Assembly: GCA_051294905.1 (NCBI GenBank)
Contig: CM119371.1
Span: 34,968,001-35,032,000, forward strand
Source of the DNA: Botryllus schlosseri
Lineage: Eukaryota
Reading direction: 5' to 3'
Length of the DNA: 64,000 nucleotides
The notes under the pieces are model-generated. The model saw only the letters and a list, made by a program, of their open reading frames with translations. It ran no database searches and was not told the origin of the DNA. Position 1 is the first letter of the stretch; each line of letters begins with the position of its first letter. This document shows, one piece after another, positions 5,801 through 64,000 of this stretch. Position numbers and translations under genes: made by a program.

Positions 5801-8800
5801 ATTGTACTTGTAGACAATTTATCAATTTCATAGGGTTGGCAATAGAATTTGTAAGATATATTTTAAGTGTTCTTATAACAATTTCAAATTGTTCAAACTC
5901 CTGCAGCTTCACATCAACCGCTTGGAATTGAGCCAAATTTGGTGTGATACGTTTTTTTAGCCAACCCAATAATTTGATAAAGTAGCTGCAAAAATTTTTA
6001 AAAAAGTGATTGAACAACCCTACTGACCATATGTGAATATAATAATCTTACGTGGATATAGCAATCTTATGACAATGACAGCTAGTCTATATTCAGTCTC
6101 GAACTACTTGGACAAGTGCCTTTGTGAAAATCTAAGCTCTGTGATGACAGCAATGCCTTGAGGAAGCTTGCCGCGATCAAAGCCTGTTCTATAGAGACAG
6201 ATTTCTAAACTACGCGAGAGGTAATTGGTTCTAAATTTTGTGGTCACTCTAGGCCGGGCTTTGGTTGCGTGCGGCTCCGATGACCAATTGAGATTATGAG
6301 ATCTGAGGGCTGGTTATAATTTTGATTATCGTGGATCGGTTGTTATTGTTGAAAAGGATTGACTGGCTCGGTTTTCAACAGGTTGTGTTTTTCAGACGTG
6401 GACTGGTAATATGGCGCAGGCCGGGCCTATGAAGCTGTCGGCCAACGATGAAAAGGATTACACGTGTATCACTTTCACGGTGAGCATATGGCAGTATTGC
6501 TTTTTGCTTATCGTAGCTATGATCTCCATAATTACAGATTTCCAGACCCCTTCAAAAGAGCGAGTCATTTAACATAACCCAAACTAACCCTAACCTTGCA
6601 TTAGTACAGGCCTAGACTATATTTTTCTTCATTTTTAGACAATGCTCTCAGCTCTGTTCGAATAAACCTCACTTGATGGGTATTATAGACACTGGAGTGA
6701 AAAGACGTGCAAAAAAATGCCTTCTCCAAAGTTACCCTGAATGCTGGAGTAATTTTGGACACAAATAATTAAAAAATATACGCTACCGATGGACGAACAT
6801 GAAGATTGTGAACCAGCTAAATAGCTAATTCTAATCTAACCCCAGAAAAACACAAAACTTCTTCCTCCTGTGCCAAAATAGTTGTCAAAGCTGAAAATTT
6901 TGTAAACGTGGGTTAAAGGTGGTGTTAGCGGGATGGTAGCTGTTAAGTTGGGGGTGTGCTTGTCGAATTGTATGCTCCACTGTAAGTTAACCGTCCCAAT
7001 TATGTGTTCTATAATGCAATGCCCGCTCTGCTGCTTGCCCAATGATGACAACCGTGCCTAGAGGAAGCCGGCTGCTTTTGAAGTCCGGCCCAGCGGACGC
7101 TTGGCACGCCACTTTGATCGTTAACTCGATCTGTGTTGTCCAGTGACCGCGGGGCTCTACTTTGCTCGCGGCCCTTCCAATGACTTTATGAGATTATGAG
7201 ATCTGAGGGCAGCGGTGATTGGTGATGTAATGTTTTGATTTCGATGGAAGATAATGGCGCTAGTCTCCGTGGTAATGTGTGAATAACAGGACTGGGTCTT
7301 GTGGGGTCGTGCTTGAAATCTGTCAGATAGTGCCGATAGCTCATTTATCAGTTCGAAATAGTAATTTTTCTATAATAAAGCGAGTATGGTATCCTCAAGT
7401 AATTAAGGGGATCACTAACATTGGAAATATTGTACTTAAGCTCAAAATGATTCTACTTGATGGAAGGGATCATTATATAGCTAATTTCACAGACACTGCA
7501 ATAACTCCTAGATTTAGCCTGGTATTAAATACTCATTTATCAGCTAAATGTAGTATTCAATATACAGTAACGCAAATATGGCACTTTCGTGTTATTTAGG
7601 TGTCTAAGAACTCGTCCAAATGTTTGTAATAATGCGCATAGCGACTCTAGCTGATTGGAAGAGACCTATAACCCACTTTATCTTGCTAATTTTGTGAACA
7701 ATTACTGTGATGCACATTGGATAAGCGCATTGGTTTTAATGCAAAGTTTGTGGAATTGGAATTTCAGCTGTCGATTTTCTAATTATTTATTAATATAGCT
7801 TCGAGTAATCGAAATCTAATGCAGAAAATGTCAAAATTCTCTATTCTTGAATAGAAAAAGTCAAATTTATGTAGGTACCAGTAATTGGTGTCTGTTTCAA
7901 TGTGTTAATATTTTTTCAGCCCGATTTGAAGAAATTCGGCATGGACAAATTAGACGCGGACACGGTGGCGTTACTGTCTAGACGCGCCTACGACATTGCC
8001 GGGTCAACAAAAGGCGTCATTGTCTATCTCAATGGCACTCGGTTACCGGTAAGCTGTCGAATGCTTTACTTCTTGCTCCGAGACTTGTAAAACCTTACGA
8101 AGCTATTTCTGCACCTTCCTTGTGCGGCGGCATATGCACATGATGCACTCACGGTGTGCATGTGCACATGAACCGCAAAAACATCGCGGACAAAAATATG
8201 AAATGTCCCATTTCGGTGATTGAATCAGTCTGACGTTGATTGTTTTAGGTGAACAATTTCAAAGATTACGTCGAGCTATACACGAAAAAATGTACGGATG
8301 AAAACGGGGTTCCCTACGAGACGGTGTATGAAAAAGTGAATCCGCGTTGGGAAGTGAGTAATTGCTGTACTACGGTAGTAGCTTGATGTATATATGCAGA
8401 AGGGGTCAATAACTAAGTTCTTTACTGTCTCAAAGTCCTTGTGTGGATTTTGCCTGCTATCCAGCACATCAGCAGACCACGTCCTTGCGTTTCCGTGCGG
8501 CGTCGTGGGGGAAGAATATTCAATGTGCGATATTACTTACTTTAAACCATTCGCAGAATGTCTCTGACACAGTCGGGATAATTCTATTGCCCGGGTTTCG
8601 TACATGAATTGTATATGAAGCAATAGATTATGTAGATATAATTGTGATTCAAATCTAATTTGGATAAGAAACTAGCTTTAGTTTTGATTTCAATCTAATC
8701 TGGAAAATTGTGTATCTATAACGCTAATTGTAAACTAATTTTGAAATAAACGGTATCTATAATTCTGATTTGTATCTAATCAAGAAAACTGTGTAGCTAT

Positions 8801-11800
8801 AGCTCTAATTGTGAACTAATTAATAAAAAAAACTGCATAACTATCATACTAACTGTAATCTATTCGAAAAGAAACTGTAGTTATAATTCTAATTCTAATC
8901 TAATTTGGAAAAACTGGGTGGTTATAATTCTAATTTTAATTTAATTTGGAAAAGAACTGTAGCTGTGACTCTGATTGTAAACCCATTTGGAAAACAATTT
9001 CATAGCTATCATTCCAACTTTGATCTATTTGAAAGAAACTAAGTTGTAGTTGTAATTCTAATTCCAAACTAATTTGAAGAAAAAACTAGCCATAATTCTA
9101 ATCAAATTCGAACAAACTGTGTAGCTAAAATTCTAATTTTAATCTAATTTGGAAAAGGACTGTAGCTATAGCTCTGATTGTAAACTAATTTACGAAAAAA
9201 ATGCGTAACTGCCATTCCAACTTTGATGCCAACTGTGTAGTTATCATTCTAATTTCCAACTAATTTGAATAAAACTAGCCATTATTCTGATTCTAATCTA
9301 ATTCGAACAAAATGTGTAGCTATAATTCTAATATAATTAATAATAAATAATGCAAGACTCTTGACGGCCAAGACCAACATTTCATTGTAATTTTGAAGAA
9401 TAGTAAAGTTACATCGTGATTGGTACTTCGTCTATTAGTACTGGCTCTTGAAAATGTGACCAAAAACTGTTGAAAGTGAGGAAAATTGGTATATTTTGAA
9501 TGTGAAACATTCAACTCTACCAAGCAAGAGTTTTAAAACGTTGCTTTGGTAAGATATTTACTGAACTGACTTGGACTTACGGCTCTTGACTTCCGCATTG
9601 GAATTGATACTTGATTCAGGTTGGAGTACTGAATCATTGCGCTCAGCCCTTCATAATACGACAATAATAACAACATATCATCTGAAATCTCGACTTAGCT
9701 GCGACTCTGAAGCGGTTCCGTCAGTCGCCTACCCTTTTTTAGGTTTGCATCACCTTATCGAAAAAAGGTTTCCAGCATTTGTCGTTTGTGAACAGCATAG
9801 CCACTTCTAAAGGGGGCCGGCACGTAGACTACATCACCGACCAGGTTGTGAAGAAAATATTGGAGATTGTGAAGAAGAAAAACATAGGCGGAAAGGGCTT
9901 CGATGTTAAGCCGTTCCAGGTAATTGCTTGCGTGTTTCTTGTACAATGTAGCGGTGTTGGTTTTGGACTCTTGAAGAATATTTCCATCGTGGTTTCAAAT
10001 TTTATCTCTTCTCTTCATTGCCGCTTACTTTTCCAGATCAAGCATCATTGCTGGATTTTCGTTAACTGCCTCATCGAGAACCCCACGTTCGACTCGCAAA
10101 CCAAGGAGCGCATGACGTTGGCGGCGAAGAAGTTTGGATCCACTTGCGCCTTGAGCGACAAGTTCCTGAAATCGGTGAGTGTTTAGAGATGCTCAGTAGG
10201 GTTGTACAAAAATGACCTCTTTTTTGGATTCTAGCCATTCACTCATTAAATTGTCAGGTTACCTTAAAAAACGCTGCACACCAAATACATACCGTAATTT
10301 TCCATGTATAATCCGCAAAATTTTCACAATTTTTCGTCCTAAAATCGAGGGGGCTCGTATTATACATAGGAACAACACGCTTGAAAAAAATCTCCCTCGA
10401 TAAAAAACTTGAAATCACACCTTTCTTCATGTTTGTTTCCAATCGCGCATCACTATCATCCATCGCCCAGTAATTCGTATTATCAGTGTTATGCGCTGCC
10501 AATTAGCATAAAGCGTTTTGTCAATTAACGAGAGTGGTCTGCACAGCACGTAATCTCTTGCTGAGTTGGTTTGCCGTTTGCACGCGAGCGTCGTTAATAG
10601 AATGCTGAATGTGCGCGCGGGCGGCAATCCTCGCTGATTCATCGATAGGCCATGTGCGCAAAATATAATCGCTTGCGTAATCAGTCGCACCTCCCGACAG
10701 GCGTGGTGTGCACGACATGACCGGTGGCCTTAGCAATCGCATCTGACCTTGTGCTCAAGATGTCGCGTCGCTGGCCTCGCGGGCTTTGGCTGCTATCTAC
10801 TATCGTATAGAGGCCATACCGTTACTTGTATAATGATTAGCAATCGCATCTATACTAGGCCTCGTGCGCAAGACGTCGCGTCGCCAGGCTCGCAGGCTTT
10901 GGCTGCTCTTTACTATCGTTTAGAGACAATGCCGTTAATCACATAATGATTAGCGATGGTTATGTCATGATTGTTCGACAGTGACATCGCAAAACAGAAC
11001 AACATCTTGTACTAAAACACAGCTATTCATGTACTGCGAATGCAGGGTGCGTACTATACATGAGACAGGCTTTTTCCCAGAATTTACACGCTATTTTAAG
11101 GGTCCGTATTATACATACGGGGGCGTACTATACTTGTAAATTACGGTAATCTGTCGCTGAGCCAATTTAAATTTTCAAGCCTGATTGATATTAGAATTTT
11201 GACTCGGTACAGATATCGTTTACGTTTCAACCACAGTAATTTGACTAACACATCCTGTAGGCTATTAATTACATGTTCTTACAATCAATTTCTATCTGAG
11301 TAAGAAACTTGTGAACTCTGTTAGAACTGGCGAACTCTATGAATCAATTCATAAGATATCCTCGCTGATGCAGCCTGTATTTTCTGCCAGTATCAAAATG
11401 TGACGTAATACGACTAGGAGTCTACTTTTTGCAATTCCGTCGCCAAACCTCGGATTTTGACCCGATTCGCGTTTGCAGGCCTCATCGTGCGGTATAGTGG
11501 ACGGCGTCATGAACTGGGTGAAATTCAAGACGCAGTCGCAGATGTCCAAGAAGATGTCCGGGGCGAAATCTAACAAGATCAAAGGTCGCACCACGTCATT
11601 TTTATGCCATTGTTAATCACTTTAAATTATGTTTTTTTTAATGAAATTTTTTTCAGTTGTATTTGTTTGGGCATTTTGACACATGATGACTATTAAAAAT
11701 TTTTATAAACTTAGTAATTGTTTATAATTTATTTTGTCAGGCATTCCAAAACTGGACGACGCCAACGACGCCGGCACCAAGCTGTCCCAGGACTGCACCC

Positions 11801-14800
11801 TGATCCTGACCGCGGGAGACTCGGCCAAGACGCTGGCCGTGTCGGGGCTCTCGGTGGTGGGCCGTGACAAGTTTGGGGTGTTTCCGCTGCGTGGTAAATT
11901 GCTTAACGTGCGGGACGCGACCCACAAGCAGGTGGGTCCGATTTTTTTCGCCCCCTCCTTGATTTACGCTAGGCTATGTCTGGGAATGATTATATCGGAT
12001 GACAGAAGGCTAAGTGTTTTGTCGATGAATGTTCAAGTATTCATACTGTATGACCCAGATTATTTACTAGGGCTGGAATAAATAGAGCGTCCGATTTTAT
12101 GCGTGGTAACAACCACTTGAAAACTTTCACAAAATCTGCACGAAAATATTGCCTGTTACGAATATTGCGGTTTCCAAAATCATTGTTTCCCAGGGTTGTA
12201 GCCAAATCACAGAGCTCCGAGTCACAAGTCAATCCCACTTATATAGTTTTGACTCGAGTCAAGTCGAGTCATTTTCAATTCACCACCGAGTCAAGTCCGA
12301 GTCCAAGTCATCGAGCAGAGGTTCGAATGACTCGAGTCCGAGTCAAAGTCAATATACAATGTTCTTTCCAATTCTCTACTAGTGGCTGACGAGTGTCAGC
12401 CAAAAATATTCGGAACATACTATGCAATTGTATACGCAAGTCAAAATGTCCGTGTTACGGAATCTGTTCTGTATAATGGCACCGATTTCAGGTGGTTCAA
12501 ACCTCTCGTCTTTTATAAGTGAAGCCTTGGCGCACATCTTATGACGGTTATGTTCAAGTATTAGCGGAATTCAATTACGCACGCACGTCGCACATATGTC
12601 GCATGCCACATACCTAAAAAAATGTCATGCGTGGCATACCTTGCATACCCAGGTTCTGCGCCTATGACTGTGATACATATTCATTCAACATGGCTATGAA
12701 TATAGCGCTGTGTTATAATGTCGCGACGCGAGATGTTTCAATAAACATGCCTAGCCTTTGTCAATATAGAACTGATGTTTTTGTGTATTTAATATGGATT
12801 TTATATCTCTGTGCTTTCAATATGGTGTTGTCAGTCATAAAAGCTATTACCTCACGCTTTTTGCATCATACCCACTGCTTCAGTTCCTAATTCTACCTAA
12901 AACGGTCTAAAAATCAATGATTTGCTTACAACTTTTCTTCTGTATATTTCGAAGACCAAGCTGTGCGGAAGTAAGATAGAAACTTGTTGCTTCCGCATCT
13001 TTTAAGCCCGAAATCAGCTTTCTAGCGTTAGCGGTTATCGGTATAGAGCGAAATTAGATGTTTTTGGCTCGTTCGGTGAAATTGCACGACCACTAGAGGG
13101 TGCATGAACCAAAAAATATAAATTTTTTGATATTTGGCAGCAAAATTTTCCATTTTTCATTCCACCCTGTCATGCAATGTATGTCTCCTGTACCGTCGTA
13201 AAGCAAATGTAAGTTTCCGAGCATTGATTGTGAAAAAAGTGTAAAAACGATGATAATTCCTGTCTAGTAAAATATTTCTTCACAGTTTTTGGCAAGACTC
13301 TTGGACGTACAGAGCTTCATTATATGCTTGAATAATATATTCATATTGAAATAAGACCCAAATGTTTTCGTATTTGTCAGCGTCTCGTATTTGTCAGATC
13401 GTGGAGAACGGCGAGATTAACAACATCATCAAGATCATGGGACTGCAGTACAACAAGAAGTACGCCGACGAGACGGACGTTAAGAGCCTGCGTTACGGGA
13501 GACTGATGATTATGACAGATCAGGTAATGGCCTTGATTCAAACCTTGCTTTGAGAACATTACCTGTAATGATTAGACTTCGGTGCAGTATACCTTATGTA
13601 GGTACATGACTGTTAAACTGTATTCATACTGTCTGAACGGGGGCTGTCTCTGACCGCGGTGACATAGTTGTTTGCGTGCGGAACAATATGTTATCGTCTA
13701 TGTGTTTGGGTTTCAGGATCACGACGGATCTCACATCAAAGGCCTGCTGATCAACTTCTTGCACGCAAACTGGCCGAAACTGCTGCATCAAAGGTAGGCG
13801 TGCCGATTTTGTTACCAAGTCGCAAGGTTCCGAGTCGCGAGTCGATCTTACTTGTATAGTTTTGACTCGAGTCAAGTCGAGTCATTTCATTTGGATACAC
13901 CACCGAGTCAAGTCCGAGTCCAAGTCAGCTAGTAGAGCAGGGCTTCTCAGTTAGCATCCCAGTTGTATTTTGTGATATGACGATAAGGGGGGCGCGAAAT
14001 TTTTCACTATCAAAAAGGGGGGCGTGTCTACAAAAAGGTTGAGAACCACTGTAGTATAGGGTCGAGTCCAAATAGTTTCTGGCCCTATTTACCAAGTATC
14101 AGTGCCGATAGACGAAATACCAATATTGCGGTGACTTAACTATTCTTCGGAGTTACGATGAAATGTCGGCCTTGAATTGCTGAATTCATAACAACTGGGT
14201 AATTGACTCCAATTCGCGTGCTGCTCTATGCTTGGTCCCTGCTTTCTGCCCTGCCGGTGAATACAAAACTGCCGGCAGGTTTCATAAACAGGGGATATTG
14301 AACCGCAGTATGCATGTGCAAAATTTCCATCGGTATGGAAGGCGTTGCATTTAGCTTACTACATTTAAATTCGAAAAATTCTTGATGAAGGAGCAGTCCT
14401 CTAAAAGTTTGTGTAAATTTTGCTTTTCGAGTGGACGTTGAATAAGGTGTGAAAGCAACCAAGATGCTGTCGGCACCCTGTTCCAAATATGATAGAGTCT
14501 GAAATTGCCGTTGAATATGTGTGCAAAACGTTGTAACAGCAGCCGTTATCCGCGGAAACGCACGGTATTTGAACTGCAGCTAAGAGATACCAAATACGAT
14601 GTACGATGGATTGGTCAAAATAAGTTAGGTTCATATCAAATCACAGTTATGAAAACGGTAAAATGTCTGTTGATTAAGGGTTGTAATGACTCGAGTTGCG
14701 ATTTTCTGATTGTAATTTCGAATAGTTAAGTAACCACACTATTGGTATTTCGTTCATTGGTACTGGTACTTGAAAACGCGACCAGAAACTGTTGAAAATG

Positions 14801-29800: not shown

Positions 29801-32800
29801 CGGGTCGTACCTGTTCTGTACTTGTCGCTTGTATGTTCTCAAACGACACGTCTTGAACTTTAAGTCAAAACGAACATGTTTCCAGCCCTAAAGTTATCTC
29901 ACGAAGTTCTGGATCAGTTTAAAATTTGATGTTTTATTTATTTTATCAATGTAAAAGCCTTCAACATTGCATCTTGAATTTAAGGTATAGAATTGTAATA
30001 TACCTGGCGGACCGGCAAGAATGTCGTCGCGGCGGTTGAGGACCGCTGATGTAGACGACATTGTCAGAATGAAGCAACACGGTTTGTCACCAGCAGTGTA
30101 CGCACTACTTGAGTGTCGTCAGCCAACATCTGCTGCTGTTAAACGTTCTTTCTCCATTCTTGGCAAGCTATTTAGTAAGGACAGACGCTTTCTACCCGAG
30201 AATGTAGGAAAGTTTTCTTTGTTGTATTACAAATAATTTTAATCATTTCTACTATAAAGCGTAATATAACTATTGGAATTCATCGTAGGGCCAGATTTCG
30301 TTAAAATGAAGTTTTTTTCACGTAAAAATTTGACAGTTTTCGATCAAAGTTTTTTTCAGGCCAAACTACTTCCTAAGGACAGACAGTTCCAACCACGTAC
30401 GAAGATAAGTAGTACAATTCTAACGTGTGAGAAAATGCCTAGTTTGCGTACGTTCGGTCAAACTTGGTCAAAATTAAGTTTTTTGAGACGAAAAAACGTC
30501 AAAATTTTGATTCGCCAAGTCAAAATTGAGTTTTTAGGCCAAAAAAATCGATCTGCTCATTACACTTTACGTTTCTATGCTTCAGTTTTGATTCTAGTGT
30601 TATTGGATATGTTACGGGAGAACGGTATGGCGCGAAATGAACCAAACTTTGTGTGCGGACATTCGCGATGCCGAACTCTGACTCAATATACACTGGTCTT
30701 GGATTTAGTTGTGTACAGTAATTCTAATTGTAATATGATTTGGAGAAGCTGAAAATTCTCTGCTCGTCTACAGTCTGCCAGGCTTTTGCAAATTGCGCTG
30801 GGATTAGAAGTGCGGCTAAACCGTTTTTTTTCTTCGAATTATAGTAGAATTAGAATTGCAGCTACAGTTTTTTTACAAATTAGCTTACGATTAGAACTAG
30901 GCTACTGACATTGAATCGGTATGAAAACACTTTACAAATTAGATTTGAATTGGAGCAAACAAGCATTTCATTAACTAGACCACAGGCGTTTAGCTCTTGT
31001 TAGTCGTGTTATACAGTTGACCTGGTCTGAACATGACTATATGACTGCAATTTGCCACCTGATAAATATCGATGAATTTTTCTGCCCAGAAACTCGCAAA
31101 CGACGAAGGCGCGGAATCGGAAGGCGAGGAGACGAACGGCGGCGCGGACTTCAATTACATTCTCAACATGCCGCTGTGGAGTCTGTCCATGGAGAAAAAG
31201 GAAGACCTCTTAAAGCAGGTTTGCCGCGTTTGCTTTTGCGATTGGGCTGCTAATCGATGAATGCGGGAAAATACATTCCCAGAGTTATACTAAGGATCTC
31301 AAAGTGTCTACTTCTGTTTGATTATATCACATCTGGCTTCATGCGCGGGTTTGTTATCGAAAACTTCCGTTCTCTAGTCAGCATGTTTGGCCCGTTTGAG
31401 TCGCCTGTCATGCGTTACGAGGGTGGTAGAGTGAGGCGCGTCGGCTTGTCATGAATTTCGGAGGCTGTTTTAGCCTCGGGAGACCTTGACGTTTGGGGCG
31501 CGTAAGTTTGCGAGAGTGGACGGGCGATTATTGTTTTGGGTGTCGCCCGTCTAGTCTGATAACCGACATTTTCCCTGTGTCGGTTCGCATTTTGGTGTGA
31601 TTGCCGATTTTGTTCTAAAAATATGTAACCTTTACAGAAAGATGCGAAGCAGACGGAGCTCGACGAGCTGTTCGGGAAGACCCCGTCGACATTGTGGCGC
31701 GACGACCTCGACAAATTTATGGAGGAATTTGAGGTGAGATTTTGAGTGTGGCTTTGAAAATTTTTGCTCCGTTTCTACGTGACTAAGAAATTTCCGTGAT
31801 TTTTCTTTCGTATTTGATCTCGAGTCAGTTTTTGAGTTTGAAAACGTGATTTTCGTGATCGAGTCGGCGGGAATGAAGCCAGATCAGCTGTGAACTATTC
31901 TATTGTACAATAGGGGTGTTCAGAAATGACTTTTTTTTTCAAATCGTACTTGCTACTTGATAAAATTGTTAGGTTACCTAATTTAAGCCTACACACCAAA
32001 TTTGGTTCAATTCCAGCCGGCAGCCGCATTGCTACAGGAGAAGAAAGTTTCTATTTATTATATAGAAATGAAGTAAAATTTGAAAATTTTCTTTTCGCCC
32101 CATGAAAGTGTTAGGTTGTCTGTAGGAATGATGTTCACCAAATTTGGTTTATTCCAACCCGTGGAAGCGGAGTTACTGCCGTCGAAAAATTTGGATTTAA
32201 ATAAAATAATATTTACGGTGACCAATTCTTTAATTGTTTATTATAGGTGTGCGAGTGTGCCCACCGTAAATACTATTTTATTCGAATCCAAATTTTCCGA
32301 CTGCAATAACTCCGCTTCCACTGGCTGGAATCGAACCAAATTCGACGTGTAGGCTTAAATTAGGTAACCTAACAATTTTATCAAGTAGCCGGTACGATTT
32401 GAGAAAAAATTCATTTTTGGACACCCCTGTTGTACAACTTGACCATTTGACGAATGGAATCGAGCCAAATTTGGTGTGCCACCTAATGATTTTATCGAAT
32501 AGCCAGTCAAATTTGACCTAAAAAGCTGCGTTTGGACAGTTGTGGTCTTGTGCGCCTGGTTTCGTGGTGCAGTTACAAATGTAAAGTTGCTTAGCGCCGC
32601 AAATGATGTTCTCACGATGGTCTTCATAACATGACGTGATGATAATTTAACATTTCAAGACTGATGCGGATAATTTAACCTAGGTATGTAACCTGCGGAT
32701 GATGCTCTGATTTTCACTGAAACTATCGTAGGCTGTCGTTAATCGAATTGTCGATCTGCAGAAAATGGAGAAGGCCGAAGCCAAGAAAGCCGGGTCGGCC

Positions 32801-35800
32801 GGCAGCCAGGGCAGGGGCATACTGACCGAGGCCGTCAAGGCTGAAGTGTTCCCGTCGCCGCACGGTGTCAGGGTGACCCCGCGGATTGACCTTGCCAAGC
32901 CGCTCGCCGGGGGGAAAAGGGGAAAGAAGGTATTGGGGTTTGAGGGTTTCGGTCAAGTTTTTTCTTTAAATTACGGCCGATTTTTTTTTCATATCGTAAC
33001 GTTATTTTCGCGGAATTATCGGTCGATTTTTTTTATGACCGGATGTTATTTTCTTGGAATTTGTGGTCAATTTTGGAAATTTCGATTTTTCTCGAAATTT
33101 TTGATCGGATTTTTTGAACGCAATGTTGTTTTCCGAAGTTCTTTACCCGCTATTGCCTTACTACCGATGTTACTTTTGGTATTTACGGTCACTAGTTTAC
33201 GTCTGATTTTGCTTGCCTGTGTTTTCAGGCGATATTTTTTGATCTTGATGTTTTATCCGAACATTCGGTCAGCTTTAGAAATTTCGATGTTTTCCCGGAA
33301 TTTGCGGTCGATTTTCAAAATTTTAATGTTTTCTTGGAAATTTTCCGGTTAGAGTTTTTGAACGCGATGTTGTTTTCTGGAATTTTTAGTCACTTTTTTC
33401 GAATCTAGATGCCGATTTCTTTAAATTTTCTTCCTGAATTCTGAGAGGCGTACAATAATAAGGGTAGTGTCCCCTGTAGAAACGCAGACCATAGCTGACG
33501 GTGTACTGGCTTTTGATCGAAAACCTGGCCTGTTTGCTTTACTTTTATTATCTTAATTGCAGGCTAAAATCGAAGACCCCACCGTCAAAAAACCGGACTC
33601 TCATTTCGTCACCGCCAACAAGAAATTAGGTATGCTACTTCCTGCTCTCGTGTGTTTTCATCCTATTTTTGTACTAATTTTTCTAGAAACTGTATCCATT
33701 CTCTAGTCAGCATGTTTGGCCCGTTTCTGTCGCGTGTCATGCGTTACGAGGGTGGTAGAGTGAGGCGCGTCGACTCGTCACGAATTTCGGAGGCTGTTTT
33801 AGCCTCGGGAGACTTTGACGTTTAGCGCGCGTAGGTTTGCTAGAGTGGACGGGCGATTGTTTTTCGGTATCTCCCGTCCTAGTCTGATAACCGACATTGT
33901 TTTGCGGAATAAAACTCTCGTCTTGGAAATATGTTTGATGCGAATTTACTACAAAAAATCTGACGATAAAGATGTAGCAAAACATATTCAACTGCATCTG
34001 CAGGCTTAAAATAAGGTTGAAATAACCCCCGCATTAGGGTGGAGTGAAAAAAAGAAAATTTTGAATTTCAAAAAGTGCCTCTGATATTTGGCCCCAAATC
34101 AAATATGAATAACTTCTATCATAATTTCAGGTTTTTACGCCCTCTAGTGGCCGAGCTTATTCACCAAACGAGTCGAAAATAGCTAATTTTGCCATATCCT
34201 GATAACCGCTATGCTAGAAAGCCAGTTTTGGGTTTAAAATCTGTGGAAGCAACATGTTTCTATCTCACTTCCATAGAACTTTGTCCTGAAAATGTACAGA
34301 AAAAAAGTTACAAGTAAAATTGCCGATTTTTAGACCGCCATTAAAAGTGTTGGATGGTTGTACCAAATTTGCAATGCCGATTAGCATGTTACTGTCTGTT
34401 GCATTGCTGCTTCAACAACGAAATCTTGTTTGAAGGACTTATCAGTTGATTTTTATATCAACCAAGTATAATTTGGATAGTAGAGAGCATGATTGAACTT
34501 TCTTCATAGTTGCAAAGGAGCTACATGACCATTGGATTTGGTGCAATATATTTTCCATAAATGAGTTCCTATTGCGCGAAAAGTCAATAAACTGATGTTG
34601 AAATTTAGTCAACTAACTCGGTATCACTTACAGGAGCTGCTGCTGCAACTTGTGTATTGCAAGATGTTGGAATAATCAACTAAAAAAGTGATTCGTTTGT
34701 GGTAGATCACGGCAAATTACGAGGAGAGAGAGAAAGGTGTAGAAAAGAAATACAAAAAAGAGAAGCAGAAAACTTAAATCTTTTGTATGGACTCTACTTC
34801 GATGGAAGAAAAGATGACACTTTGAATATGGTTGAGGCACCCACTGGAAAATGCTCTATGACAACAGACCTGGAGGAACATATTGTTTTAGTAGGATAAC
34901 CAGGTGAGTATTACCTCTGTCACTTGTCACCTCCCAATGGAAAAGGTCGTATTTTGGCAAAAATATATCGGTTTATTTCTAACACCGACCTCTGCAAAAT
35001 CCCAGCTGTTGTGAGATCAGACGGTACAGCTTCAATGACAGGGAGATTCAAAGGCTGCATTCGTGCAATGGAAGAAATTTTACAAAGACCACTTCAATAG
35101 GCTATCTGCTTGCTTCATGATAATGAGCTGCCATTCTACATATCCGCCTTGAAAGTTGTAATTTATAATATTGTATTGCGTGTTTGAATTACGCATTGCT
35201 GTGAAAACATATCTTGATGGCAGCTCATTACCATGAAGCAAGCAGATAGCCCATTGTAGTGGTCTTTGTAGAAGTTCATTGCACGAATGCAGCCTTTGAA
35301 TCTCCCTGTCATTGAAGCTGTACTGTCTGATCCCACGACAGCTGGGTTTTTGCAGAGTTTGGTGTTGGAAATAAACTGATACATTTCTTGGCAAAACACG
35401 ACCTTTTCCATTGGGAGGTGACAAGTGACCGAGGTAATTCTGACCTGGTTCTCCTACTAAAACAATATGTTTCTCCAGCTCTGTTGTCATAGAGCATTCT
35501 CCAGTTGGTGCCTCAACCATATTCAAAGTGTCATCTTTTCTTCCATCGAAGTAGAGTCCATACACAAGATTTAAGTTTTCTGCTTCTCTTCTTTGTATTT
35601 CTTTTCTGCACCTTTCTCTATCTCCTCGTAATTTGCCGTGATCTACCACAAACGAATCACTTTTTTAGTTGATTATTCCAACATCTTGCAATACACAAGT
35701 TGCAGCAGCAGCTCCTGTAAGGTCCAATACATTATACCGTTCACAAACTCTTGCCAAGTTGATCCCCAACACATGGTTTTGGTTTGATGGTTGAGCACCT

Positions 35801-38800
35801 CCCATAAAAGTTGAATCATTACCAGAAGATGTTGATTAAGATTGCATTGACTCTGAATCACTTTGATTAAAGCTGAATTGCCCGATAGAAGTGCTGGCAC
35901 CTGCATTAGAATCACCGGTTGTTGGATTGAGCTTGACTGCCTTCGAAATCTTTCGTCAGCTGATGAAAGAGGCACAGCGTCAACCAAACCTTTTCCCTTG
36001 CGCTCTGCTTTCTGATCTTCAAATCTTTCGGTGCCATTCTTAAGCCACATTGGAGTGCAATTTTATCTCTCTGTTTGCTATCGCAGCAGAAGATGCCAAA
36101 AAGCCTATCAATATCTTGCAAGAACGTAGTTTCCATTTCTTTATAAGAATTTGATGTTCTAGATTTCTTGTGATACCGAGTTAGTTGTCTAAATTTCAAC
36201 ATCAGTTGATTGACTTTTCGAGCAATAGGAAACTCATTTATGGAAAATACATTGCACCAAATCCAATGGTCATGTAGCTCCTTTGCAACTATGAAGAAAG
36301 TTCAATCATGCTCTCTACTATCCAAATTATACTAGGTTGATATGAAAATCAACTGATAAGTCCTTCAAACAAGATTTCGTTGTTAAAGCAGCAATGTAAC
36401 AAACAGTAACATGCTAATCGGCATTGCAAATTTGGTACAACCATCCAACACTTTTAATGGCGGTCTAAAAATCGACAGTTTGCTTGTAACTTTTTTTCTG
36501 TACATTTTCAGGACAAAGTTCTATGGAAGTGAGATAGAAACATGTTGCTTCCACAGATTTTAAACCCAAAACTGGCTTTCTAGCATAAGCGGTTATCAGG
36601 ATATGGCAAAATTAGCTATTTTCGACTCGTTTGGTGAATAAGCTCGGCCACTAGAGGGCGTAAGAACCTGAAATTATGATAGAAGTTATTCATTTTTGAT
36701 TTGAGGCCAAATATCAGAGGCACTTGTTGAAATTCAAATTTTTCTTTTTTTCACTCCACCCTACCCCGCATACGCGATAATGTTGTTAGGTTGGCCAGAA
36801 CGAAGTCTTCCGCACCAAATTTACTCAATTTCAACAAATAGAAGCGAAGCTATTATAGTTTACAAAATCTACTTGTATATTCTTCCAATTTTACAGGCAA
36901 CACAATGAAATGTTGAGTTATCTAGAAAAAAACGATGTGTAGCAAATTTACCTCAATTCCAACCAGTATTATAAGTTATGTTGTTGGTGTTCAAAAATTT
37001 GAATTTGAAATTATGGTACTTGCAGTGGGTCGGGATAATAATTAATGATTAAATAATTTTTGAATCTAAAGCTTTGTACTGCAATAACTCGTGTTTGGAA
37101 ATATTGTTAAAATGTTTTTCGTTCGTCTGTTCAGTGGCATCTACCAGGGAAAAGTTTCTTCGTTATTCCTGAAACTTTGATTTGTGTTTATAATCGCGAA
37201 TGCCTTCCAGGTATGGACATGGACGTTGACGATGATGTCGACAAGCCGCTGTCGCTAGCTGAAAGGGTCAGTTTGAAGAAGGGCTCTGAAAACGATAATG
37301 AAGACGAGTGAGTTTTTGTTGCGTTGCTGCGTGCGCGACGGTCGAGGTTGCAACCAAGTCACAAGGTTCCGACTTTTAGAGTTTTGACTCGAGTTAAATC
37401 GAGTCCAAGTCGACTAGCAAGGGGTCGAGTCCGGGTCGTAGTGTGTTTTGACTTGAGTCCGAGTTCAATTTGACTCGAGTCATTTTAAGCATTTGAAAAT
37501 ATGACTCGAGTCGCCAAAACAAAATCGTGACTCGAAGTCATCACAATGCTAGCTGCGATATGCGCAACATGGAAACTGTAATTTTCTAGTTTTGTATTTT
37601 AGCCTGACCTTTCTGTACAGGGATGCTGTCGACTTGGACGATAATGACCATGGCGCGGAGGAGTCCTCCAAGAAGGCCGATCCCTCTTCGGACGAGATTA
37701 TGGAGCTGAAGTCGCCCTCTCCCGTCGCTAAGGTGTGACGAGATGTTAGTCAAAATTTTTGGCTGTGTAATAGGGCGGTTGTTTTATGACATGGCGAAAA
37801 GTTGGAATTTTGTCAAAATTGCAGAGTTAGGCCGCGCAAAATATTTACCAAAGGGAAAAATTTCTTATGCATCCGAACTGTGTTTGTGTCGTAGAAGTTG
37901 CGCTGTCTGCGCACCAGGCTTGGCCGAGTTGTAGTCTAATTTGTGAAATACTTCTTTGCTCCAATTTCATTCCAATTTCTGGTTTTCCTGCAGATTCTGC
38001 GTGATAACTGTACAGTAGGGCTGTTTGAAAAAAAAACCTTTTTCTTCAGATTTCACTGGCTACCTGCTAAAATTGTTGGGTACGTGAAATCTTCGCTGCA
38101 CACCAAATTTCGCTGAAAACCAACCAGTAGAAGGGAGATTCTTGCGCTAGAAAAACTTCTAATCAAAGAGTTAGCCACCGTAAATACTATTTTATTCAAA
38201 TCCAAATTTTTCTACTGCAATAACTTTGCTTCTAGTGGTTCGAATGGAGCCAAATTTGGTGTTTATCATATCTACTGACAGCCTAACAATTGTATGGGGT
38301 TGACAGAACAAATTTGAAATTTAACTTATGTTTTAATGATGAATTTAAAACTTCCTACTGCAAGAAAATCTCTTCTAGTGGTTGGAATCGAGCCAAAGAT
38401 AGTGTGCAGCGTTTTTTTAACCAACCTAACAATTTTATCAAGTAGCCAGTGAAATCTGAAGACACAGTTTTTTTTTTAACAGCGAAAGACTGTGGCAGTA
38501 ATTGTAATTCGGGGAAAACTTTGTAGCTGTAATTCAAATTGTGATTTGATTTCATCAAAATTGACAACGTTCTAGCGGTACAGTTTGTCTTCAAGTGCCA
38601 AATTCTAGTTTTTGTCAATCCAAATCCTCGCTCTCTCTGGTGAAATCACGTGAACCGCGCGGTGCGGTATTGCGAATCTGGCTGATTTGGCATTTGCCGG
38701 AGAAGAAACACTTTTGGGTTGGTGCTTTCGGTTTAAAAACCCCGATTTTCGTCCTTGCAGAAAACCCGGGCCAACCGAAGGAAGCTGCCGAAAACGGGGT

Positions 38801-41053
38801 CTAGCGAAGACGTCAGCACTCCGAACAGTGAGTGATGTCTTTCCCGGGGATATTTTAGGATATTTATTCAATATGTACCTTTTATGTGACTAGGAATAAT
38901 CTATGTTATACATCACATTTAAGATTATTTGGTATTTGTTCTACTGCACCTATCTCGTCGCGCTTTGTGTCTCTGTGGTTTGATCATGGCTCGGGCGATT
39001 TTTTTTTGACATGTCAAAAAACGTCAAATTTTGTCAAAATTGTAGCGTTAGGTCAAAAAATGTCAAAATTGTTTACAAAGTCAAAAAATTTTAGCAAACT
39101 TTGTTTCGTATGTATCGTAGATTTTGCACTGTCGGTGAACTTATCATTCGGCATTTTACAGCTTCTAGACGACCCATAGTGAATCATAAACATTCAAATG
39201 AAACAAATAGGTTGACATGGTGTTATGGTCAACGTACCGCAATATCCTAACTGAAGCAAGTCTGCGTGGGCATTGATTTTTATATCAAGAAGCGCATGAT
39301 GTAAAATTGTGAAGTAGACACCATTGTCAGAATGAAGCGACACGGTTTGTCACCAGCAGTGCACGCACAACTTCAGTGTCGTCAGCCAAGAACTGCTGCT
39401 GTCGAACGTTCTTTCTCCATTCTTGGCAAGCTACTTAGTAAGGACAGGCACTTTCTACCCGAGATTGTGGGGAAGTATCAGTCGTTGTACTACAAGAAAT
39501 TTTGATTATTTCGACCGTAATACGTGATGTAACTCCTCGAATTCTTCATAGGGCCAGATTTCGTTGAAATGAAGTTTTTTCAGGTAAAAATTTGTCAGTT
39601 TGAGTCGAATAAAATTTTTCAAGCCTAACTACTTCGTAGGGACGGACAGTTCCAACCAGAAATGAATGTAATTGGTACAATGCTAAGATTATGTGTGAAA
39701 ACACCTCAGTTGGATACGTTGCGTTAAAATTGTGATTTTTGAGGTGAAAAAATGTCAAAATTTTTTAGATCAAAATCTTCCGTTTTTTTTAGATAAAATC
39801 GCCCTAATCATTACTTTACAGATCATTTCTACAAACGTGTAAAAATTTGTACTGCATATTTTGTATAGCGTGAATCGGGAGTTTCCGCGGTGAAGAATAG
39901 CATTGAAACTGTAATTCTCGTTGATAATTCTTGGTTATAAATTCAACTCTTGGTGGCGAAAAAAGTACTCGAATCGTTGTAACCAGACTAGTTATCAGAC
40001 GCGGCACGCCGTGTGGCGTGATTTTCAAAGAATTTGCGCTATCTGTGACTCTGTCTTTTTAGAGCAACCCAAAAAGGCTCCCGCCGCGAAGACGCCTGCT
40101 AAAACTGCCAAGGTTTGTCAATTTCTGTCTTCCGGGTTCTTGTGAAATCGGAAAATTATCGATTTTTTGCCGCGAATGATGTTATCACGATGGTCTTCGT
40201 AATACGATTTGACGATATCTTTTATTTTATGGCTGACGCGACAAAAATTTCTGATTACGACTGGTTTTTTATCGAACTGGGGTGGGGCGCGTTAAAATTG
40301 TGCCTGTCATTTTTTAGCCCACCCCTAAGAAGGCTAAGAAAACAGACCCCTCGGACAGGCCGGGAGCGTCTCGCAAAATGTCCGACTGTGACAGCGTCGA
40401 GGTGGTGAAGGAATCTCCGGCCGCTAAAAAGACGGCCCCGAAAGCCCGTGTCAAGGTGAGCTTTCGAACAAGTCTCGTTTATATTAGCGTAAGATTTGTG
40501 GACGTGTGATTTTTGGAACTAGGCATTTGGTGTATTTTTTAGATTCTCAAAACTTGAGCCACTGGAATGATGTATTAAATTATTGATGTTGTAATGAACC
40601 CGGAATTTTTCGGCTGACACTCAGGGGTAATCGTCAGCAACTAGTAGAGAATCGGAAAGAACATTGTATATCTGCCATCGTATCATGAAATGTGAGGTCA
40701 CCGGCACGAAATTTCTAATACCCGGCCAAAAAGATCACTCCATCTACTGCTGTCAGCATAAGAAAGCTTGGTAGTAACCAAGTCGCAAGGTTCCAAGTCA
40801 ATCTAATCTCACTTTTTACAGTTTTAAATTGAGTCAAGTCTAGTCATTTTCATAAGGACATGTAACGTTGACTACATCGACAGCTGCTGGCGTAAATATT
40901 TCTTCTCGGATAGCTACTCTCACGGTGGTCGTCGTAATGGTCACTCGCGTTCAAATTCGGTCCGTATTTTCACAGCCCACCCCTAAAAAGGCCACGAAAA
41001 TAGACCCGGACGGCAGCGAGGCGGAAAAGAAGGCACCACAGGCTCTAGTCGAG
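2846..41053 (+). CDS. TOP2: DNA topoisomerase II (type IIA), multi-exon, 5'-incomplete; TOPRIM Glu replaced by Ala
   Basis: Exons with AG/GT boundaries and consistent phases: 2846-3000, 4966-5111, 5183-5280, 6396-6479, 7920-8048, 8249-8353, 9743-9919, 10037-10174, 11479-11584, 11741-11931, 13398-13523, 13717-13793, 15784-15923, 16563-16672, 18886-19093, 21148-21269, 22199-22347, 22701-22787, 23167-23311, 24559-24693, 25008-25108, 26997-27096, 27727-27841, 29022-29194, 31090-31218, 31638-31733, 32762-32929, 33563-33629, 37211-37307, 37621-37732, 38761-38827, 40063-40112, 40318-40455, 40976-41053 (4119 nt, no stops). Motifs: [65 protein letters not shown] (catalytic Tyr), GIGTGW, and a K/acidic C-terminal tail. 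The C-terminal exons are less certain than the core. Confidence 0.97.
3408..3784. mobile_element. hAT MITE family A (TAGGG...CCCTA, near-palindromic)
   Basis: Long inverted arms; flanks CTGTACAA/TTGTACAG. Confidence 0.8.
4195..4782. mobile_element. Palindromic non-autonomous DNA element with 5-bp TSD
   Basis: CCATAGTGTCCTATATGG...CCATATAGGACACTATGG; ~275-bp near-perfect arms, ~30-bp spacer, flanked by TGAAA/TGAAA. Confidence 0.85.
5414..6022. mobile_element. hAT MITE family A
   Basis: TGGGGCTGTTTG...GAACAACCCTA; 8-bp TSD CTGACCAC/CTGACCAT. Confidence 0.75.
6135..6311 (+). ncRNA. SNORD97: Long box C/D RNA, SNORD97/SCARNA97-like (predicted tRNA-Met C34 2'-O-methyl guide), copy A
   Basis: Box C TGATGA 6142-47, box D CTGA 6303-06, terminal stem AGCTCT/AGGGCT. 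Guide AGATTATGAGA (6291-6301) is complementary to tRNA-Met UCUCAUAAUCU, with D+5 on C34. Ends 84 nt upstream of the 3' splice site. Confidence 0.85.
7036..7211 (+). ncRNA. SNORD97: Long box C/D RNA, SNORD97-like, copy B
   Basis: TGCCC-AA-TGATGA (7043-48) ... AGATTATGAGAT-CTGA (7203-06)-GGGCA. The ends closely resemble human SNORD97 as recalled (UUGCCCGAUGA...AGAUUAUGAGAUAUGAGGGCAA). Confidence 0.88.
8630..9340. repeat. AT-rich ~40-bp degenerate minisatellite (second array 21620-22150)
   Basis: Repeated CTAATTTGGAAAAACTGTAG(C/T)TATAATTCTAATT-like units. Both arrays follow the same ~160-bp head (8464-8625; 21443-21600). Confidence 0.8.
10292..11146. mobile_element. pogo/Tc2-type MITE, second copy
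   Basis: TA|CCGTAATTT ... AAATTACGG|TA; colinear with 1910-2713. Confidence 0.8.
11979..12059 (+). ncRNA. SNORD41: Box C/D snoRNA, SNORD41 (U41)-like, copy A
   Basis: Stem TCTGGG/CCCAGA, variant box C ATGATTA, variant box D ATGA. Guide GTATTCATACTG pairs with 28S CAGUAUGAAUAC in the same register as U41 (GUAUUCGUACUGG-CUGA). Confidence 0.8.
12190..12360. repeat. Dispersed GAGTC/GACTC-rich repeat family (also ~510-620, 13820-13930, 15510-15570, 18080-18450, 37350-37540, 40780-40850)
   Basis: Recurrent TTTTGACTCGAGTCAAGTCGAGTC...AAGTCCGAGTCCAAGTC motif. Confidence 0.75.
13562..13641 (+). ncRNA. SNORD41: Box C/D snoRNA, SNORD41-like, copy B
   Basis: Stem CCTGT/ACGGG, box C ATGATTA 13568-74, guide GTATTCATACTG 13620-31, box D CTGA 13633-36. 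Ends 75 nt upstream of the 3' splice site. Confidence 0.85.
13938..14051. mobile_element. Charlie-type hAT mini-MITE
   Basis: CAGGGCTTCTCA...TGAGAACCACTG; TSD TAGTAGAG/TAGTATAG. Confidence 0.7.
14880..15494. mobile_element. hAT MITE family A
   Basis: TAGGGCTGTTCAAAAAA...TTTTTTGAACAGCCCTA, long inverted arms; TSD CTGAGCAG/CTTAGCAG. Confidence 0.85.
16773..17596. mobile_element. Charlie-type hAT MITE inserted in a hATm-derived MITE
   Basis: CAGTGGTTCCCAA...TTGGGAATCACTG; TSD TTCTAGTG/TTCTAGCG. The flanks (16684-16772, 17597-17778) rejoin into the hATm end sequence. Confidence 0.8.
17193..17530. mobile_element. hAT-type MITE nested in the previous element
   Basis: TIR CAGGACCGTAAC/GTTACGGTCCTG; TSD GTGAGGAA/GTGGGGAA. 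Confidence 0.75.
20967..21046 (+). ncRNA. Box C/D snoRNA with 28S guide ATACTGAAAAT, copy A
   Basis: Stem TTCTGG/CCAGAA, box C GATGATTA, internal CTGA, box D ATGA 21037-40. Guide is complementary to 28S AUUUUCAGUAU. Confidence 0.72.
22891..22965 (+). ncRNA. Box C/D snoRNA-like gene, orphan guide
   Basis: 10-bp stem TGCATTCCGG/CCGGAGTGCA, box C GATGATTA, box D ATGA 22952-55. Shares its 5' end with the 28865 copy but has a different D guide. Confidence 0.65.
25623..25982. mobile_element. hAT MITE family A
   Basis: CAGGGTTGTTAAAAAATG...CATTTTTGGACACCCCTA; flanks ATATTCAT/ATATTCGG. Confidence 0.7.
28865..28936 (+). ncRNA. Box C/D snoRNA with 28S guide ATACTGAAAA, copy B
   Basis: TCCGG-GATGATTA ... 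GGATGA ... TATACTGAAAAG-ATGA-CCGGG. Same guide and register as the 20967 copy. Ends 85 nt upstream of the 3' splice site. Confidence 0.72.
30021..30236 (+). mobile_element. hAT transposase C-terminal fragment in a repeat; second copy ~39310-39500
   Basis: [24 protein letters not shown] here; the second copy reads [20 protein letters not shown] (the hAT third catalytic Glu motif). Confidence 0.65.
31365..31571 (+). ncRNA. SNORA74: H/ACA snoRNA, SNORA74 (U19)-like, copy A
   Basis: About 205 nt with three hairpin-like segments and ACA at 31566-68. Blocks GTCAGC, GCCTGTCATGCGTTAC, GAGAGTGGA and CTAGTCTG match U19 as recalled. GTCA/GTTAC and GAGAG/AGTC can pair with 28S helix 69 (GUAACUAUGACUCUC). 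Ends 66 nt upstream of the 3' splice site. Confidence 0.72.
31911..32429. mobile_element. hAT MITE family A
   Basis: TAGGGGTGTTC...GGACACCCCTG; perfect 8-bp TSD TTGTACAA. Confidence 0.85.
32597..32669 (+). ncRNA. SNORD35: Box C/D snoRNA, SNORD35 (U35)-like, copy A
   Basis: Stem CCGCA/TGCGG, box C ATGATGT, guide TCTCACGATGGTCT (pairs with 28S AGACCGUCGUGAGA; same guide as U35), C' GTGATGA, box D CTGA 32661-64. Confidence 0.88.
33694..33899 (+). ncRNA. SNORA74: H/ACA snoRNA, SNORA74 (U19)-like, copy B
   Basis: Close paralogue of 31365-31571. Starts ATCCA; ACA at 33894-96. Confidence 0.72.
34035..36763. mobile_element. hATm-type element made of two inverted 5' ends with broken transposase fragments
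   Basis: TAGGGTGGAGTG...CACTCCACCCTA; perfect 8-bp TSD CCCCGCAT. Both arms encode [11 protein letters not shown]...[14 protein letters not shown]...SD.T...LQRPLQ.AICLLH.NELP, pointing inward. Confidence 0.9.
38016..38480. mobile_element. hAT MITE family A, degenerate right end
   Basis: CTGTACAG|TAGGGCTGTTTGAAAAAA; inverted arms homologous to 14880-15494. Confidence 0.65.
40169..40242 (+). ncRNA. SNORD35: Box C/D snoRNA, SNORD35-like, copy B
   Basis: GCCGCG-A-ATGATGT-TATCACGATGGTCT-T-CGTA ... CTGA (40233-36)-CGCGAC. Ends 75 nt upstream of the 3' splice site. Confidence 0.85.
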
Positions 41054-52049: not shown

Positions 52050-52054
52050 AACAA

Positions 52055-63800: not shown

Positions 63801-64000
63801 GAGCACTTGTATATAATAGAAATATCGGCGTCTTTAATCGGAGAGCTATACGTGTAATTTTGCGAAAGACGTTGGCCAGGTGATGATACTCGCGCTATTT
63901 CTCTGAAAAGTAGAGATGAAATTCGACTCGAACTAGACGGTAGAATTGGCTAAAACTCGGTTCGATTATGCTTTGGGACAAGCCTCGACTCCTGTACGTG
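57820..64000 (+). repeat. 210-bp tandem satellite array, homogenised, running off the window
   Basis: GGTTAAAAGT recurs at 58331, 58541, 58751 and onward (period 210); about 27 near-identical monomers after 58.3 kb. Confidence 0.98.

Follow-up and report, generated by a model that had tools for sequence, protein, structure and literature searches.

The introns of a DNA topoisomerase II (TOP2) gene of Botryllus schlosseri hold a series of sequences that resemble small nucleolar RNAs (snoRNAs), and the question raised by this locus is whether these are working guide RNA genes and, if so, how so many of them came to be housed in one gene. The gene lies in a stretch of 64,000 nucleotides (nt) on contig CM119371.1 of GenBank assembly GCA_051294905.1 (positions 34,968,001 to 35,032,000 of the forward strand), which we call the window and in whose coordinates positions are given unless a contig is named. 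The answer that we favor, with good though not complete confidence, is that the TOP2 introns of the window carry eleven sense-strand snoRNA genes, that these were duplicated within the gene and then together with their host, and that their guides have been kept by selection.

Eleven snoRNA-like genes in the introns of TOP2

An open reading frame (ORF) at 9779-10186 matches Pfam DNA_gyraseB, and this exon was used to retrieve a full-length TOP2 protein (P0003, from an assembly that we take to be a vertebrate's), which in a tblastn search gave about 25 colinear segments on the plus strand from 2843 to 32944. Exons placed from these segments and from spliced complementary DNA (cDNA) contigs give a host gene at 2843-40457 on the plus strand with about 30 coding exons mapped. 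The exons of its low-complexity C-terminal tail, past ~33.6 kb, are partially mapped, and the gene starts upstream of the window, the first matched exon being at C1:34,967,736-34,967,870.

A sequence-only reading of the window had claimed eleven snoRNA-like genes on the sense strand with one in each intron, and all of them were located as described: every element is on the plus strand in a TOP2 intron of its own, nine being of the box C/D type and two of the H/ACA type. The first two are long SNORD97-like RNAs, copy a at 6135-6311 (177 nt; C box GUGAUGA 6141-6147, D box CUGA 6303-6306, 5-bp terminal stem) and copy b at 7035-7212 (178 nt; C box AUGAUGA 7042-7048, D box CUGA 7203-7206), the latter with a terminal stem, UGCCC/GGGCA, that is the Rfam consensus. 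They are followed by two SNORD41-like RNAs, copy a at 11979-12059 (C box AUGAUUA 11986-11992, D box AUGA 12050-12053, 6-bp stem, guide 12037-12048) and copy b at 13562-13641 (C box AUGAUUA 13568-13574, D box CUGA 13633-13636, 5-bp stem). An unnamed box C/D pair that we designate by its UUUUCAG guide comes next, with copy a at 20967-21046 (C box AUGAUUA 20974-20980, D box AUGA 21037-21040, 6-7 bp stem) and copy b at 28865-28936 (C box AUGAUUA 28871-28877, D box AUGA 28928-28931, 5-bp stem), and between the two lies an orphan box C/D RNA at 22891-22965 (C box AUGAUUA 22902-22908, D box AUGA 22952-22955, 9-10 bp terminal stem), which begins with the same 20 nt as UUUUCAG copy b. Toward the 3' end of the gene, two H/ACA RNAs resembling SNORA74 (U19), copy a at 31366-31570 (ACA 3 nt from the 3' end) and copy b at 33695-33898 (Rfam RF00090), both with the H box AGAGUG, alternate with two SNORD35-like RNAs, copy a at 32597-32669 (C box AUGAUGU 32603-32609, D box CUGA 32661-32664, 5-bp stem, D' guide 32610-32623) and copy b at 40171-40240 (C box AUGAUGU 40176-40182, D box CUGA 40233-40236).

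All nine C/D candidates have both boxes and a terminal stem of 4-10 bp, and all nine were recovered in a relaxed scan for box C, box D and terminal stem that gave 23 matches on the sense strand versus 8 on the antisense strand. Five of them, the SNORD41-like pair, the UUUUCAG pair and the orphan, use the C box AUGAUUA, and four of these five have the D box AUGA. In this combination a U at C-box position 6 and an A at D-box position 1 can substitute for the usual G-C pair, and the same variant pair, AUGAUUA/AUGA, is found in the Rfam consensus of SNORD97. A CUGA inside the UUUUCAG guide was considered as the true D box and rejected, because it is AUGA that immediately precedes the terminal stem and because the orphan and the SNORD41-like RNAs use AUGA or CUGA at that place.

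The regularity that every family is present twice, also part of the sequence-only reading, is true from the first complete element to the last, but it does not hold as a rule. A decayed third SNORD97-like remnant was found by pattern search at ~1290-1365 on the plus strand, with the 3' half only and a guide mutated at 2 positions (GAGAUUACGAAAU-CUGA). The neighboring TOP2 paralog described below has three SNORD97-like and three SNORD35-like elements, and the remnant aligns to a partial SNORD97-like copy there.

The elements were also said to end mostly 65-100 nt before a 3' splice site, and this was confirmed, with seven of the eleven ending 67-101 nt before the next exon: SNORD97-like copy a at 84 nt (exon 6396), SNORD41-like copy b at 75 nt (exon 13717), UUUUCAG copies a and b at 101 nt (exon 21148) and 85 nt (exon 29022), SNORA74 copy a at 67 nt (exon 31638), and SNORD35 copies a and b at 92 nt (exon 32762) and 77 nt (exon 40318). 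These distances correspond to the position known to be best for the processing of box C/D RNAs (Hirose and Steitz 2001, as cited in PMC13736004). The distance is 201 nt for the orphan, ~0.7 kb for SNORD97-like copy b and ~1.3 kb for SNORD41-like copy a, which begins 47 nt downstream of its 5' splice site. If these RNAs accumulate, they would most likely take the standard route of intron-encoded snoRNAs, in which exonucleases trim the intron back to the snoRNA once it has been spliced out.

Family assignments

The Rfam gathering scores of the four families concerned are 36 bits for SNORD35 (RF00211), 71 for SNORA74 (RF00090), 41 for SNORD41 (RF00588) and 45 for SNORD97 (RF01291). At gathering thresholds the sole report in the window is SNORD35 copy a (32598-32673, 41.4 bits). 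With E-value thresholds, SNORD35 copy b (40171-40245) reaches 34.6 bits (E 2.4e-4), just under the gathering score, and both SNORA74 copies are matched over their full length at 59.8 bits for copy b (E 1e-12) and 50.0 bits for copy a (E 7.5e-10), again below the gathering score, so they are best called divergent members of that family or SNORA74-like. SNORD41 matches weakly, though over the full length, and below its gathering score at copy a (11980-12058, 25.7 bits) and, in a narrow scan, at copy b (13562-13641, 18.6 bits). SNORD97 matches copy b weakly (18.6 bits, E 2.6), with the alignment covering both ends, that is, the terminal stem, C box, guide and D box. The SNORD97 scan left copy a unmatched; the interior of that model is vertebrate-specific. 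No Rfam family matched the UUUUCAG pair or the orphan. The names SNORD35, SNORA74, SNORD41 and SNORD97 given earlier to these elements are reasonable, with Rfam support for both SNORD35 and both SNORA74 copies, weak support for both SNORD41 copies and SNORD97 copy b, and none for SNORD97 copy a, the UUUUCAG pair and the orphan. Another weak Rfam match, to MIR4416 at 15102-15254, was rejected because it sits in a palindromic repeat.

Predicted guides and their targets

Targets were taken from the ribosomal DNA (rDNA) array of this genome on contig C28, with 18S, 5.8S and 28S delimited with Rfam. Eight of the nine C/D candidates have an antisense element of at least 10 nt immediately upstream of box D or D' that puts a target nucleotide at the fifth position, the orphan being the exception.

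The two SNORD41-like guides form 12-14 perfect pairs with 28S 3048-3061 and select U3051, copy a having a 12-bp perfect match to 28S 3048-3059; the rDNA array reads UUUUCAGUAUGAAUACG at this place. The Rfam SNORD41 D guide, GUAUUCGUACUG, targets a conserved 28S uridine within CAGU, and both window copies carry GUAUUCAUACUG, one base off the consensus with A for G. This A faces a U in the genome's own 28S (CAGUAUGAAUAC), so guide and target fit each other, and both copies would direct 2'-O-methylation of U3051. The UUUUCAG guides, which may be derived relatives of this pair, form 10-11 bp with 28S 3043-3053 (copy b with 3044-3053) and select U3047, 4 nt upstream of U3051, as their predicted methylation site. 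Upstream of a shared AUACUG, the guide of UUUUCAG copy b still resembles the SNORD41 guide.

The SNORD35-like RNAs are predicted to act through a D' guide on 28S 3278-3291, where copy a pairs over 14 bp including one G-U and copy b over 12 bp (28S 3278-3289), and this D' element (UCACGAUGGUCU) is invariant in both window copies and in all three copies of the paralog. In both SNORD97-like copies the D guide (UUGAGAUUAUGAGAU-CUGA) can form 14-15 bp with the anticodon arm encoded by the tRNA-Met(CAU) genes of this genome, which carry UCUCAUAAUCUCAA, and C34 then falls at D+5; the guide is invariant in all complete copies. These two RNAs would direct 2'-O-methylation of the wobble C34 of elongator tRNA-Met. 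GC-rich complementarities inside the SNORD97-like interiors differ between copies and were judged to be due to chance. Elsewhere in this genome (C15:16,979,000-17,012,000), at least 15 sites matching the tRNA-Met(CAU) anticodon arm are densely clustered on both strands and are presumably tRNA-Met genes.

The SNORA74-like RNAs are expected to guide pseudouridylation of 28S. For the orphan, a search of the genome's own rRNA found no convincing rRNA target, and its best complementarities, to 18S 1174-1186 and 18S 524-537, were rejected because they have no D' box after them or are not conserved in the paralog. If the other guides act as predicted, then the modification of rRNA and of a tRNA in this organism would be tied to TOP2 transcription, as the sequence-only reading had proposed.

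A second TOP2 gene with the same cargo

A second complete TOP2 gene (C1:34,892,000-34,935,800, minus strand; L033-L038) stands head-to-head with the window gene, ~32 kb upstream of it, and has a counterpart for each of the eleven elements, with order and introns unchanged, as well as the extra SNORD97-like and SNORD35-like copies already mentioned, one of each. Because the same elements are found in both genes, the duplications within the gene predate the duplication of the gene itself.

Between the two genes the snoRNA bodies are 89% identical and the 250-nt flanks 74% identical, the latter value being consistent with a synonymous divergence (dS) of 0.35 in the host exons. Among the eight C/D RNAs whose guide is known, 3 of 198 positions differ in boxes and guides, versus 95 of 644 in the remainder of these RNAs (Fisher p = 8e-9), a pattern that indicates purifying selection on guide RNAs, which would have held boxes and guides almost unchanged since the gene duplication. 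Identity to the paralog copy is 89% for SNORD97-like copy a and 84% for copy b, with boxes and guides invariant in both, 94% for SNORD41-like copy a, 97-99% for UUUUCAG copy b and 93% for SNORD35 copy b, and UUUUCAG copy a has kept its guide and D box intact in the paralog with one change in the C box. Terminal stems remain paired through one-sided and double changes, and the orphan has kept its boxes and stem. In an alignment of six SNORA74 copies, the variable columns fall largely in regions predicted to be unpaired, and there is one compensatory change from G-C to A-U.

Host gene expression and constraint

The window TOP2 gene is transcribed and spliced, since cDNA-type contigs from two public runs join 29192/31088, 31215/31635 and 31731/32760 over GT..AG introns, some of the contigs matching its exons at 99% identity or better. 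The claim that TOP2 is a multi-snoRNA host is upheld in that the anatomy, guides and selective constraint are as in real snoRNAs and the host is expressed.

The protein encoded by this gene has nonetheless changed in a conspicuous way. In the TOPRIM motif (11806-11820, in the exon at 11741-11931), the catalytic Glu is replaced by Ala (GCG); the head-to-head paralog (C1:34919653-34919841) and outgroups have the canonical LILTEGDSAK. The same Ala is found in another TOP2 copy on contig C17 (L043), so the change is not an assembly slip. Relative to the outgroup, the window gene has 59 private amino-acid changes versus 19 in the paralog (p = 6e-6), and its protein evolves about three times faster. 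No stop codon interrupts its frame in the 1,066 codons aligned, and the mean omega is 0.19, observations that point to a protein under relaxed but persisting constraint and that argue against a TOP2 gene serving as a host-only carrier of snoRNAs.

Several observations weigh against the reading that we favor. A single element of the eleven passes its Rfam gathering score, and three of them (the two UUUUCAG copies and the orphan) are without any family match. A simple bipartite pocket search with SNORA74 against the genome's own 28S gave nothing convincing, a weak 8+3 bp candidate at U2716 being what it returned. In SNORA74 copy a, 1 nt that the other copies have is missing from the last hairpin, the H box of both window copies ends in G where the paralog has AGAGUA, and both guide regions of the orphan differ between the paralogs. 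Because of the deletion, the H-box G, the weak pocket result and the drift of the orphan's guides, some copies may be redundant or decaying. Intron flanks are 80-88% identical in places, so conservation of the whole body is by itself a modest signal. In the interval 28800-34000, two cDNA contig sets and two raw-read RNA runs were compared with the window, and coverage fell on exons and transposon-like repeats, with raw reads on repeats only; these libraries were probably of a poly(A) type, and the result is uninformative rather than negative with regard to small RNAs. A run search showed that several public runs of unknown kind contain part of SNORA74 copy b.

If the signs of decay are given their full weight, then the window copies could be redundant passengers of a degenerating gene, with the working snoRNAs supplied by the upstream canonical TOP2 paralog or from elsewhere. 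The loss of the TOPRIM Glu and the excess of private amino-acid changes would suit such a history, as would the non-consensus H box and the deletion in SNORA74, the decayed SNORD97 remnant and the drifting guide regions of the orphan. Decay in either lineage, however, would have struck the boxes and guides of the eight C/D copies, which differ by 1.5% at a dS of 0.35, and the host continues to be transcribed and to be spliced correctly, with a low omega and an uninterrupted frame. We consider it unlikely that the window set as a whole has been abandoned in this way.

Possible gene conversion and the history of the duplications

The similarity of the snoRNAs between the two genes could also be ascribed to gene conversion between head-to-head paralogs rather than to purifying selection, in which case it would have little bearing on function. 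The SNORA74 copies do look homogenized within each gene, with states shared by both window copies, such as the H-box G, that are absent from both paralog copies, and several plain intron stretches are 85-92% identical. But the differences lie in the non-guide interior of elements of 70-180 nt and leave boxes and guides untouched. Conversion tracts would not sort in this manner, and purifying selection is favored because gene conversion alone would not spare the boxes and guides only. At a partial TOP2-tail locus at C1:6.22 Mb, moreover, two SNORD35-like copies are 92-93% identical within flanks of 70-76% identity. Conversion as the main cause of the pattern is, in our judgment, very improbable.

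The set was probably assembled as snoRNAs were duplicated, time and again, into further introns of their own host gene, after which the whole gene was duplicated with its cargo. Identity within the pairs ranges from 91% for SNORA74 through 77% for SNORD35 and 63% for SNORD97 to SNORD41, in which it is confined to the boxes and guide, and such widely differing values suggest duplications at different times. Spread by copying into nearby introns, the route that the sequence-only reading had put forward, agrees with the fact that the pairs are adjacent and differ in age, and is plausible but unproven. The shared order and introns of the two genes, in turn, point to a later duplication of host and cargo as a whole.

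The SNORD41-like pair, the UUUUCAG pair and the orphan may constitute one expanding family, in which a 4-nt change next to box D would have moved the selected nucleotide from U3051 to U3047, a shift that works because the rRNA reads UUUU there. A bolder scenario, which we regard as rather unlikely, combines this gain of U3047 by a duplicated SNORD41 through a 4-nt guide shift with a particular fate of the host: the window TOP2, catalytically compromised by the Ala in place of the TOPRIM Glu, would be a duplicate kept partly for its snoRNA cargo and an intermediate on the way to a non-coding host.

Copy number and repeats

Six of the elements were searched in the 495 Mb of the genome, and each was found at 3-6 loci that always lie in TOP2-derived regions (for example, SNORD97-like copy a at 4 loci, SNORD41-like copy b and UUUUCAG copy b at three each, and SNORA74 copy b at six). 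Besides the window, they comprise a region of the opposite strand 40-100 kb upstream, together with small contigs that resemble alternative haplotypes or further copies. With so few loci for each of the six, all of them in TOP2-derived regions, the elements are not the high-copy transposon fragments that the sequence-only reading had named as a possible pitfall. That they are transposon fragments or conserved intronic cis-elements mimicking boxes by chance has next to no probability left, for although the introns are full of palindromic repeats and of repeats resembling miniature inverted-repeat transposable elements (MITEs), and weak Rfam matches such as MIR4416 sit on these repeats, the copy numbers largely refute the idea, and the full-length covariance-model matches in two families and three independent guide-target fits, to the genome's own 28S and tRNA-Met, speak against it as well.

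Partial copies of the TOP2 3' tail were observed at two further places in the genome (L028, C1:6220251-6223329, which is the tail locus at 6.22 Mb, and L027, C18:443068-446146), with 70-76% identity over 2-2.7 kb. A genome search with the TOPRIM exon matched only the window, the paralog and the copy on C17, and did not match L028, which may be a TOP2-derived non-coding snoRNA host.

The palindromic MITE-like repeats of the TOP2 introns lie at 5423-6017, 14871-15503, 25621-25984, 31903-32437 and 38020-38483. An intron of the tail contains a larger inverted structure at 34035-36763, in which arms at 34035-34627 and 36170-36763, 96.6% identical to each other, flank a 1.1-kb self-palindrome (34627-35721), and which is probably a recent insertion of a foldback-type transposon. 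Beyond the gene, the window contains a region resembling a long terminal repeat (LTR) retrotransposon at 49700-54900, with reverse transcriptase and RNase H ORFs on the plus strand (51996-53528) and an integrase on the minus strand (50042-51733), and a long tandem array at ~58300-63900 with a period of ~210 bp, a regular series of 41-amino-acid ORFs and strong positive GC skew.

Comparison with known systems

That snoRNAs are encoded in introns and are duplicated within their host genes is textbook knowledge, and vertebrates have several protein-coding hosts that carry multiple snoRNAs with one in each intron, among them RPL13A (SNORD32-35), NOP56, EIF4A2 and TAF1D. The window TOP2 gene resembles these in having sense-strand elements, one to an intron, with C/D RNAs 70-100 nt before the 3' splice site, and in that snoRNA production would be coupled to transcription and splicing of the host. 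It differs from them in that TOP2 is not a ribosome or translation gene and in that eleven elements are at the high end. The same families are found in human in hosts quite different from TOP2, with SNORD35A in RPL13A, SNORD41 in TNPO2 and SNORA74A in MATR3. The human host of SNORD97 is EIF4G2 (PMC6601510). A full-text literature search turned up no report of snoRNAs hosted by TOP2, and a search on tunicate snoRNAs, which included a look at a tunicate survey of non-coding RNAs, gave no mention of such a host. The presence of eleven guides from at least five families in the gene of a proliferation-linked DNA enzyme shows how thoroughly host associations can be reshuffled in a chordate lineage. 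For the annotation of this genome, the gain consists of homologs of SNORD35, SNORD41, SNORD97 and U19 and of two unnamed C/D families.

Elongator tRNA-Met C34 is the experimentally demonstrated target of human SNORD97 and SCARNA97, which reach it through a D guide (Vitali and Kiss 2019, PMC6601510). Like these two, the SNORD97-like elements are long C/D RNAs (~177 nt) with a D guide to C34 and occur as two diverged isoforms; the guide core AGAUUAUGAGAU is identical to that of Rfam SNORD97, as is the terminal stem in copy b. Unlike human SNORD97, they score far under the gathering score of the covariance model and have unrelated internal regions, and their boxes are canonical (RUGAUGA/CUGA) in contrast to the AUGAUUA/AUGA of the Rfam consensus. 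In the tunicate Ciona, only one SNORD97 candidate has been reported (PMC6601510), whereas here each TOP2 gene has two old copies, 63% identical, with extra or decayed copies in addition.

Host turnover and the expansion of snoRNA families by duplication are well documented (PMC13736004), and snoRNA cis-duplication and host turnover are the subject of the "constrained drift" model (Hoeppner and Poole 2012) and of Weber 2006, both as cited there. The TOP2 set agrees with this model in its paralogs in neighboring introns, its births and deaths of copies, its new guides in duplicates and its lineage-specific host. It departs from it in that the whole host was duplicated with its cargo and the full set kept in both genes, and in that a shift of the guide seems to have given one paralog family a new target 4 nt away. 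The gene duplicate serves as a natural replicate, in which selection on boxes and guides can be seen at single-nucleotide resolution. A host copy that lacks the catalytic residue and retains the cargo poses the question of whether the protein or the introns keep the duplicate alive, a question that is experimentally approachable.

A closely spaced pair of methylated uridines has a precedent in yeast 25S, in what we take to be the same stretch of 25S/28S as the SNORD41 site. There, each of two close uridines has its own C/D guide, snR51 for Um2729 and snR67 for Um2724 (PMC5699541). The two methylations predicted here, at U3047 and U3051, are likewise a few nucleotides apart, with a spacing of 4 nt versus 5 nt in yeast. 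In human, we know of no methylation at the equivalent of U3047. The UUUUCAG family may illustrate how a new methylation site arises beside an old one. Set beside these systems, the window TOP2 gene is clearly a known arrangement in an unusually large example and in an unexpected host.

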